64,000 bases of DNA from Macrostomum lignano (Eukaryota): contig NIVC01002258.1 of NCBI GenBank assembly GCA_002269645.1, forward strand, positions 62,001 through 126,000, given 5' to 3'. The notes under the pieces are model-generated. The model did not search any database and had not been told where the DNA came from. It saw only the letters and a program-made list of their open reading frames with translations. This document shows, piece by piece, positions 23,801-26,800 of the stretch. Each line of letters starts with the position of its first letter. Position 1 is the stretch's first letter. A program made the position numbers and the translations under genes.

Positions 23801-26800
23801 CTGCCGCTGCATAACGCAGCCGAGATGGCAATTGGACAGCAGAACGCGTGGAGACAGCTTCATGCGGTTAGTTAGATAAAGTTAGTTAGTTAGTTAGTTA
23901 GTTAGTTAGTTAGTTAGTTAGTTAGTTAGTCAGTTAGTTAGTTAGTTAGTTAGTTAGTTAGTTAGTTAGTTAGTTAGTTAGTTAGTTAGTTAGTTAGTTA
24001 GTTAGTTAGTTAGTTAGTTAGTTAGTTAGTTAGTTAGTTAGTTAGTTAGTCAGTTAGTTAGTTAGTTAGTTAGTTAGTTAGTTAGTTAGTTAGTTAGTTA
24101 GTTAGTTAGTTAGTTATTTAGTTAGTTAGTTAGTTAGTTAGTTAGTTAGTTAGTTAGTTAGTTAGTTAGTTAGTTAGTTAGTCAGTTAGTTAGTTAGTTA
24201 GTTAGTTAGTTAGTTAGTTAGTTAGTTAGTTAATTATTTAGTTAGTTAGTTAGTCAGTTAGTTAGTTAGTTAGTCAGTTAGTTAGTTAGTTAGTTAGTTA
24301 GTTAGTTAGTTAGTTAGTTAGTTAGTTAGTTAGTTAGTCAGTTAGTTAGTTAGTTAGTTAGTTAGTTAGTTAGTTAGTTAGTTAGTTATTTAGTTAGTTA
24401 GTTAGTTAGTTAGTTAGTCAGTTAGTTAGTCAGTTAGTTAGTTAGTTAGTTAGTTAGTCAGTTAGTTAGTTAGTTAGTTAGTTAGTTAGTTAGTTAGTTA
24501 GTTAGTCAGTTAGTTAGTTAGTTAGTTAGTTAGTCAGTTAGTTAGTTTGTTAGTTAGTTAGTTAGTTTGTTTGTTTGTTAGTTAGTTAGTTAGTTAGTTA
24601 GTTAGTTAGTTAGTTAGTTGGTTAGATAGTTAGTTAGTTAGCATGTCGCATCTGGAACAAAATAAAAGCAGTTCCAGAGTCACATGACCAAAGTACAAAA
24701 TTCGATCTCCGCTCCCAGACGGAGATGCTGTGTGCTGGCACGCATTCGGCAGGCCGAGGGTCTGTTCGCCACGTGTGAAGAATTTCTTCTTAAAATTGAT
24801 TGAGGCAAATTGCGAGGCAGCGCACGTGGGAAGTCTGGCCGTAATGAATCTTAGAGCCAAGGCCAGATGTTTGACCCTTCAGACTGACATCGAAGACCTC
24901 TCGCTCGCCATTTGCTTCTGAGAAAATACTGAAGCCTTGCATTGCGTTGTTCAGAAAAGATTTTAGATAGAAAGACAGACAGACAGGCAGACAGACAGAC
25001 AGACAGACAGACAGACAGGCAGACATACAGACAGACAGACAGACAGACATACAGACAGACAGACAGACAGACAGACATACAGACAGACAGACAGACAGGC
25101 AGACATACAGACAGACAGACAGACAGACATACAGACAGACAGACAGACAGACAGACAGACAGACAGACACAGACAGACAGGCAGACAGATGGATAGATAG
25201 ATAGATAGATAGATAGATAGATTGATAGATAGATAGATAGATAGATAGATAGATAGATAGATAGATAGATAGATAGATAGATAGATAGATAGATAGATAG
25301 ATAGATAGATAGATAGATAGATAGATAGATAGACACAACCTTCTCAACCCGCAGCTGCTGGCGGCCATCACGGATCTGATCGGCAAGGCTCAGAGAGCGG
25401 TTGTTAGCCTGCAGGACTCTCTCGCCAAGGAGGGCAGCAACCCAGACGGCAACCACCGTCTGATGAGGCTACCCACCCCCAGGTCGCAAGTCACCCGCCA
25501 TATCAACAGGTGGCTCCATCAGCAGCACCAGCTCCACTGGAACAGCTGCACCGAGTACAGGCAGAGCCGCTCTGCCATGCCTAACCTGAACAGGAAAGTC
25601 TCTGATTATCTGATTTCGCTTAACAGAACCGACCTCAGGGAGATGTGCATGGTCCTAACCGGCCACGGATTCTTCCAGAGACATATATCGTTGCAAACCG
25701 GTTGCCCTCCCACCTGTCCCTTCTGTGGCATAGGAGAGGAGACCGCGGAGCATCACGTCACCTTCTGCCCTTACTTCAACAAGGCGCGGCACAAATACCT
25801 CGGCCACCCCCAGCGGATGGACGAGCTGACCACCGCGGACAATATCCGAGACCTCCGCGCCTTCGTCCGGGACTCCGGCCGGATGAGGGTCGCCGATGCC
25901 TCCACTGCGGACCTGCCGACTACTGGCGGGGACTGGGCGCACCCCCAAGGCTAATCCTTGTGCTCTTTTACCTTGGGGTTGCGATAGGGGCCTCGCGGCC
26001 TATTCGCGGCGCCTGCGCCCCCCGTCAGTAGTAAGTAAGTAAGTAGCCTGCAGCAGATGCAGATGCAGCAGCTGCTCCAGCCGTCGCTAAATGACCCCCT
26101 ACAGTCGAGTCGAGTGCTGCAGAAGCAGCAACTGGGTAAGCGAAAACAATCTCTTTCCAGTCCGGTTCACTCGATCTCAGCAGGTGCTGCTTGGTTAATT
26201 AATGCGTATTAAGCTGCCGTCGCAGTCATCAGTTGAGCTTATTTTCACCTGCAGATTTTGTGATTAATTGTTCCAGGAAGGTCGCGCGTTGTTCAAGTCT
26301 CTAAGAATTAATTGGGCTAAAATTTATTTTTGTTAAATTTATTGTTAAAATTCTTTACAACTCTACTTTCAGTAGTTGAGCTAGCCGCATCAGTATTATT
26401 TATTAGAGATAAAAAACCCACAGACACGCTGGTGGCCGGGCGGCGCCGGCAGGCTCAGGAGGAGGTGCGGCTGGCTGTGGAGCTGGCTGAGCAGCGTGCC
26501 AGCGAAGCGATGGCAGCTGAGAAGCAGCGCAGCGAGCAGCTGATGACCCAAGTGCGCCAGATGGTCAGGAAGGACGACGGCATCGGTGGCGGCGCAATGC
26601 GAGGGCAGAGCAGCGCGGCAGAGGTGGACAGAGCTGCGTCGCTTTTCCTACACTACTGCCTAAGAAGATCTGGGAGGGTCCTGAGGGTCTGGGAGGGTCC
26701 TGAGGGTCTGGGAGTGTCCTGAGGTTCTGGGAGGGTCCTGAGGATCTGGGAAGGTCCTGAAGGTCTGGGAGTATCCTGAAGGTCTGGGAGGGTCCTGAGG

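Follow-up and report, generated by a model that had tools for sequence, protein, structure and literature searches.

A stretch of 64,000 nucleotides from the flatworm Macrostomum lignano (NCBI GenBank assembly GCA_002269645.1, contig NIVC01002258.1, positions 62,001 to 126,000 of the forward strand), hereafter the window, carries on its plus strand a gene that is, by its domain content, a homolog of the co-repressor ETO/MTG8/nervy (CBFA2T), one copy of this gene in M. lignano. The exon assigned to the core of its oligomerization helix, NHR2, is split by a 629-nt segment that is, by homology, the 3' end of a 5'-truncated non-LTR (long terminal repeat) retrotransposon of the LINE (long interspersed nuclear element) type. 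An earlier note on this DNA, made from the letters and a list of open reading frames (ORFs), had proposed a recent LINE insertion at this site and an in-frame chimeric protein. All coordinates below are those of the window.

The host gene and its interrupted exon

The gene was modeled as seven exons with GT-AG introns and matching phases, encoding TAFH, NHR2, an NHR3-like region and MYND, and the model is open from TAFH to the natural stop once 25415-26053 is removed. Exon A (18428-18538; donor CTG/GTGAGC, the slash marking the splice junction) encodes the N-terminal half of TAFH (NHR1). It was first placed by tblastn with a query that served as a lead only, and was then confirmed by Pfam and PDB matches of the spliced model. 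Its frame is open for a further 180 nt upstream (18248-18427), with no ATG in that stretch; further 5' exons or a trans-spliced leader may precede it. Exon B (19687-19952; acceptor ...ctcccag/ACC, donor AAAG/GTTGGT, phase 2) encodes the C-terminal half of TAFH and a linker, and by itself matches Pfam TAFH at 3.9e-10. Joined, exons A and B match Pfam TAFH at 1.7e-22 (79.6 bits, against a cutoff of 27) and the ETO TAFH structure 2h7b in PDB at 1.9e-25.

Exon C (22163-22362) encodes a Ser-rich linker with a PPKKR motif and bridges exons B and D in frame only with phase 2 in and phase 1 out. When exon C was joined straight to exon E, a phase clash and a stop codon resulted, and this led to exon D (23655-23866; acceptor ccttctcatcccaacacccag/AC, donor GCG/GTTAGT, phase 0), which encodes more linker and the N-terminal part of NHR2. 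The exon D acceptor at 23654/23655 is strong, and the exon aligns to the family block EEWKNIHTML. Exon E is the interrupted one. Its 5' part (25355-25414) supplies 20 codons of the NHR2 helix core and aligns to the family block MLNCILxMVEKTKRAxxILQ. Its 3' part (26054-26135) opens with a Q, as expected from the consensus LQ/QR, and ends in phase 1 at the donor G/GTAAGC, the GT lying at 26136. Exon F (26424-26623; acceptor cccacag/AC in phase 1, donor GAG/GTGGAC in phase 0) encodes the NHR3-like charged helical region; it aligns with the family block RRAEEAVNxVKRQA..., and a whole-family profile matches PDB 2kyg (CBFA2T1 NHR3) at 3.7e-7. Exon G (27496-27680; acceptor ccatcgggcag/AGC) encodes the MYND (NHR4) zinc finger and the stop codon. 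The finger matches the CBFA2T1 MYND structure 2od1 in PDB at 2.3e-18 and Pfam zf-MYND at 2.2e-8, and its Cys and His residues are all invariant in the family alignment. The TAFH and MYND matches in Pfam and PDB thus bear out the assignment to MTG8/ETO made in the earlier note.

The identity of the interrupted block as NHR2 rests on a family profile, which was needed for this link, rather than on the window protein alone. When 1.84 billion representative sequences were scanned in full by HMMER with the protein restored by removal of the insert, 590 homologs were returned, and for many of them the alignment is continuous from about residue 255 as far as the MYND finger. In an alignment with 17 ETO-family homologs, the block encoded by exons D and E falls under the family consensus EEWKNIxTMLNCILxMVEKTKRAxxILQ/QRx, whose conserved positions are the W, the L of LL, the K, R-A and L-Q. 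The restored junction, SLQ/QMQ, agrees with the consensus ILQ/QR, and none of the 17 homologs has extra residues at this point. The block is collinear with 14 homologs, and a profile built from it alone is matched at about 3e-21 by 4jol and 1wq6, both solved structures of NHR2. The Pfam NHR2 match is longer and scores higher on the restored than on the interrupted sequence. Searched directly against PDB, the restored exon gave no NHR2 match, either alone or together with its flanks. A word-indexed protein search with the concatenated TAFH, NHR2 and NHR3 exons returned nothing at E<=1e-3, since the collection contains no close relative and, with a database this large, more distant ones do not reach the threshold. 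By alignment, the junction is equivalent to ...RRSLTVLR/RCQEADREEL of human ETO, about two thirds along the NHR2 helix. The block is collinear with its homologs, and the restored exon reads without a break to G/GTAAGC; both the placement of the insert in the NHR2 exon and the proposed single continuous exon with a GTAAG donor are thus supported.

The introns of the gene are rich in simple repeats. Microsatellites make up nearly all of the intron that separates exons D and E (23867-24641 and 24965-25335). A (GTTA)193 array begins with the exon D donor GTTAGT as its first unit, and a second array, about 370 nt of (AGAC)/(GATA)n, stops 19 nt short of the exon E acceptor. Between the two TAFH exons lies an array of 27 copies of a 41-bp unit (18568-19658).

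The inserted element and its boundaries

The insert (25415-26043, 629 nt, 60% GC) lies in sense orientation with respect to the host gene. Its translation matches P0001, a protein of 299 aa encoded on a metagenome contig of 1.3 kb; the two are 64% identical over 179 aa, the full length of the insert translation, without gaps. A Pfam RNase H domain (2e-10) spans residues 10-127 of P0001, and the alignment with the insert starts at residue 121, in the last RNase H helix (ADKLAKSGS in P0001, DSLAKEGS in the insert). Because the alignment begins within this helix, the insert is a 5'-truncated copy. The nucleotide identity is about 70-84% from the first base of the insert to the tail. The relative lies on a 1308-nt contig, L001 (ENA ERZ28573520, scaffold_643652), which is presumably animal DNA within the metagenome sample and possibly comes from a flatworm.

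The element part of the reading frame comprises 180 codons (25415-25954), from the last RNase H helix (DSLAKEGS...) to the C-terminus of ORF2, and is in frame with exon E. A CX2CX8HX4C zinc knuckle, read from the translation and conserved in P0001, is encoded at 25715-25768; its match to Pfam zf-RVT is weak (E about 0.1, below threshold). The ORF closes with a TAA at 25955-25957, a premature stop for the host transcript. The 3' untranslated region that follows (25958-26026) is conserved with positions 1014-1090 of L001, including ...CGCCCCCCGTC. The window and L001 can be aligned at the DNA level up to ...CGCCCCCCGTCAGTAGTAAGTAAGT, and the L001 element closes with the same ...CCCCCCGTCAGTAGTAAGTAAGT end, where homology stops. 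The simple-repeat tail, AGT(AGTA)n, occupies 26027-26043 and is readable as AGT(AGTA)4 to 26045, its final TA overlapping the first two bases of the host target. These features answer to the LINE end with RNase H remnant and CCHC finger, and to the (AGTA)n tail, described in the earlier note.

The insert is bounded, as had been noted, by a perfect 10-bp direct repeat, TAGCCTGCAG, with one copy at 25405-25414, the last 10 nt of the 5' part of exon E, and the second 639 nt away at 26044-26053. Because the last TA of the tail overlaps the decamer, the target-site duplication is 8-10 bp long, and 8 bp if the TA is assigned to the tail. Repeated 10-mers within 900 nt are not rare, and a second such pair, D4, is also present; the decamer was therefore tested by its position. 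Both ends of the element can be fixed by homology to L001 independently of the repeat. At the 5' limit, identity to L001 is 30/45 nt inside 25415 and 11/45 outside; at the 3' limit, homology ends in the tail in both sequences. The position of the decamer is thus an independent test, and the repeat lies exactly at the limits of homology. The chance of a 10-mer match at fixed element limits is about 1e-6, or about 5e-5 when 3 nt of slack are allowed at each limit. Beyond the tail, L001 reads TGAGTGCAGCG (1091-1105), and the window target reads TAGCCTGCAGCA (26044-26053); TGCAG occurs a few bases past the tail in both, which, with two cases, may reflect a target preference or chance.

What was found at this site is what target-primed reverse transcription (TPRT) leaves behind: homology to the 3' part of a LINE ORF2, a simple-repeat tail and no terminal repeats, and a target-site duplication together with 5' truncation. 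The same precision bears on the thought that the insertion was produced by an assembly error or a chimeric read. M. lignano assemblies are reported to be difficult, with 36% of the length of Mlig_3_7 in chimeric scaffolds (PMC10733133), and the element is multicopy. A mis-join, however, would not give a precise target-site duplication abutting the repeat tail, nor would it place the 5' truncation where excision exactly restores a conserved helix, and an artefact of this kind is highly improbable.

Four M. lignano proteins in UniRef share the C-terminus of the element, two of them at 74/75 and 72/75 aa (96-99%), and this near-identity indicates that the family is multicopy and young in M. lignano. 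The intact frames and splice sites of the remaining host gene, the perfect duplication, the intact element ORF and the near-identity to other copies point to a recent insertion, in agreement with the earlier proposal. An RNase H-type, (AGTA)n-tailed LINE family is, on these comparisons, recently active in M. lignano. There is little room for the view that an old constitutive intron, or an exon that was domesticated, lies here. In its favor, the host gene has many large, repeat-filled introns; but of the 11 registers in which the repeat permits excision, not one has GT-AG or GC-AG ends, the 17 aligned homologs have no extra sequence here, and at the protein level the segment is 96-99% identical to copies of the element elsewhere in the genome. 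This explanation is highly improbable.

No second copy of the element was found in the window. A metagenome scan with the 3' end of the element gave no matches, the M. lignano genome lying outside the collection, and look-ups of the exact products of the element ORF and of the ORF downstream of the insert found neither on record. A literature search on M. lignano non-LTR elements or exon insertions found nothing specific.

RNase H-bearing non-LTR clades with simple-repeat tails include I, LOA, Tad1, Ingi and Nimb, the tail of the I factor being (TAA)n. The element resembles this group in the RNase H domain of its relative P0001, the CX2CX8HX4C motif at the end of ORF2 and the tandem-repeat tail. 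De novo LINE insertions into exons are well known, for example the human L1 insertions in exon 14 of factor VIII and the Drosophila I-factor and jockey insertion alleles. The present case shares with them the 5' truncation, the 3' repeat tail, the short duplication, the placement in an exon, in sense or antisense, and the premature stop. Unlike them, it has an (AGTA)n rather than a poly(A) tail, and its family carries RNase H before the C-terminal CCHC knuckle; furthermore, the host is a neopolyploid flatworm in which the lesion probably affects one of about three copies, so that a phenotype is not required. The insertion is real, young and of an ordinary kind, a new instance of a well-known class of mutation.

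Consequences for the transcript and the protein

From the acceptor at 25354/25355, the reading frame stays free of stops for 200 codons, of which the exon supplies 20 and the element 180, and ends at the element TAA; an ATG at 25463 lies 36 codons into it. The product predicted from the seven-exon model consists of TAFH, the linker, a truncated NHR2 and 180 element residues, and has neither the NHR3-like region nor MYND. The earlier note had read the same frame, with the same 36 codons from the acceptor to the ATG, and had described a chimera with about 180 aa of LINE and without NHR3 and MYND; translation of the frame agrees on each point.

The element stop lies 178 nt upstream of the exon E donor. 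The interrupted transcript is therefore a likely target of nonsense-mediated decay (NMD). Neither AATAAA nor ATTAAA occurs in exon E or the insert. Skipping of exon E was considered as a rescue and rejected, the restored exon being 142 nt long so that its omission shifts the frame. Because the stop stands about 180 nt before an exon junction and far from the normal 3' end, decay of the mRNA and a null copy are favored, and would be a more likely outcome than a stable chimera or a cryptic rescue.

A stable chimera of TAFH, partial NHR2 and a LINE tail might act as a dominant-negative or neomorphic ETO devoid of the C-terminus that binds NCoR/SMRT. The exon frame does run open through the 180 element codons, TAFH is intact, and about two thirds of the NHR2 helix are kept. 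Against these stand the position of the stop, which with the long 3' region downstream makes a typical NMD substrate, and the cut within the NHR2 helix, which makes co-oligomerization with intact copies doubtful; moreover, entry into the element in frame has a one in three chance of arising in any case. Such a protein is accordingly a quite unlikely product of the locus. AML1-ETO9a keeps an intact NHR2, which is required for its activity. The predicted product resembles AML1-ETO9a-type truncated ETO in keeping TAFH and being devoid of NHR3 and MYND/NHR4; it differs in that its NHR2 is cut at about two thirds, it has no RUNX1 partner, and its transposon-derived stop probably triggers decay. A bolder form of the idea holds that the insertion allele is transcribed and escapes decay, and that its product, tailed with the LINE zinc knuckle, interferes with the intact ETO copies of other subgenomes. 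This is very unlikely. If it were true, a regenerating flatworm would carry a naturally occurring dominant-negative allele of a co-repressor, and a transposon would have been caught making a duplicated regulator diverge in function instead of merely eliminating it.

Cryptic splicing might instead remove the element and let the copy make a near-normal protein, in frame and short of 5 or 4 residues. The candidate donors are GCG/GTTGTT at 25399/25400 and GTT/GTTAGC at 25402/25403, both of which preserve the frame, and the candidate acceptor is ...cctgcag/ at 26053/26054, in the second copy of the duplication, which ends in CAG. Similar weak donors are used elsewhere in the host gene, namely GCG/GTTAGT in exon D and AAG/GTTGGT in exon B. 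The acceptor, on the other hand, is preceded by the purine-rich (AGTA)n tail and has no pyrimidine tract, and the residues lost would include the nearly invariant L of ...ILQ in NHR2. Rescue by this route is unlikely, and the null copy remains the preferred outcome.

Genome context and the fate of the gene copy

M. lignano has three paralogous subgenomes, S, L1 and L2, with about 1.4-2.4% single-nucleotide divergence and about 98% small-scale identity (PMC10733133). The differences between them are dominated by indels, which amount to 5.5% of the length of the coding sequence (PMC10733133); a transposon insertion in one copy of a coding sequence is therefore expected in this animal. The interrupted locus fits such post-polyploidy fractionation by indels, known from genome-wide statistics rather than from this locus (PMC10733133). 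The earlier note had guessed that another haplotype or paralog makes the allele tolerable. The three nearly identical subgenomes support this guess from the literature, not from the locus itself, and redundancy plausibly explains why the insertion is tolerated.

The most probable account of the locus, given a probability of roughly 0.85, is that a member of a young LINE family was inserted by TPRT into exon E of one copy of the single-type ETO/MTG8/nervy homolog, a copy which is now effectively null and buffered by redundancy. Insertion would have taken place in sense orientation into a single genomic copy. Reverse transcription would have been primed on the (AGTA)n tail, with a 2-nt TA microhomology at the nick, and would have broken off prematurely, so that no more than the final 629 nt of the element were copied; a staggered cut in the second strand would then have produced the 8-10-bp target-site duplication. 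The NHR2 oligomerization helix is cut about two thirds along, between the equivalents of ...TVLR and RCQEADREEL in human ETO. The host frame runs through the 180 element codons to the TAA, and the transcript would probably be degraded. The copy would then be effectively null, its loss probably buffered by intact copies in the other subgenomes, and the insertion would represent an early stage in the loss of a gene copy that follows genome duplication, as opposed to a functional fusion.

Four observations weigh against this account. By itself, the protein scores 14-16 bits against Pfam NHR2 (best 16.3, E 0.008-0.04), below the cutoff of 27. No Pfam domain at all, and so neither reverse transcriptase nor endonuclease of the element family, was found in the element-derived M. 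lignano models P0002-P0005, which resemble frameshifted gene models. The description of the host gene as otherwise intact covers TAFH to the stop. Finally, no M. lignano ETO protein that could represent a paralogous copy was found in the protein collections searched. The empty-site junction GCGGTTGTTAGCCTGCAGCAGATGCAG, for its part, had no matches in the metagenome scan, in which the M. lignano genome lies outside the collection.

The window is also packed with micro- and minisatellites beyond the gene. Across positions 1-57000, introns and intergenic DNA are filled by minisatellites, dozens of arrays in all, whose units of 9-60 nt recur 10-80 times, and these arrays create many long spurious ORFs. 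Such a density fits the repeat content of about 75% reported for M. lignano. Three further genes were recognized, all on the minus strand. A Rad51-family gene (about 34110-36352) consists of two exon-sized pieces that match Pfam Rad51 (9e-19 and 6e-10), with a Walker A motif, GSGKT, and a 16-bp tandem array (35088-35869) between the pieces. A PUM3/Puf-A-like gene (about 46114-48617) matches Pfam CPL at 1e-9 and has PUM-HD proteins as its best matches. It shares a 64/64 identical stretch and several shorter identical ones with the M. lignano UniRef protein A0A1I8FQB3; its overall identity of 52% to the M. lignano protein was considered as a sign of another species and rejected, the figure arising from 100%-identical stretches broken by frameshifts in the model. 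The identical stretches and the near-identity of the element copies mark the window as DNA of M. lignano or of a very close relative. The last residues of an ORF at 44287-45582 (minus strand) agree, with one difference, with the C-terminal end of the PUM-HD model P0156 from M. lignano, and this model may fuse neighboring features or stem from a paralogous copy. A DDHD-domain gene (phospholipase DDHD/SEC23IP-like, about 53093-56770) matches Pfam DDHD at 9e-20 and has arrays of 39 copies of a 30-bp unit and 21 copies of a 21-bp unit in or beside its exons.

The insertion in the ETO homolog calls for no new mechanism, and it would gain greater weight only if the chimera proved to be made and to be active, or if the genome had no other copy of the gene. 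It can serve as a presence/absence marker for lines or subgenomes, and it points out the subgenome copy of the ETO homolog that is probably defunct. As such, it offers a clean and datable case in which a transposon disables one of the copies of a conserved transcriptional co-repressor, in an animal whose polyploidy is recent.

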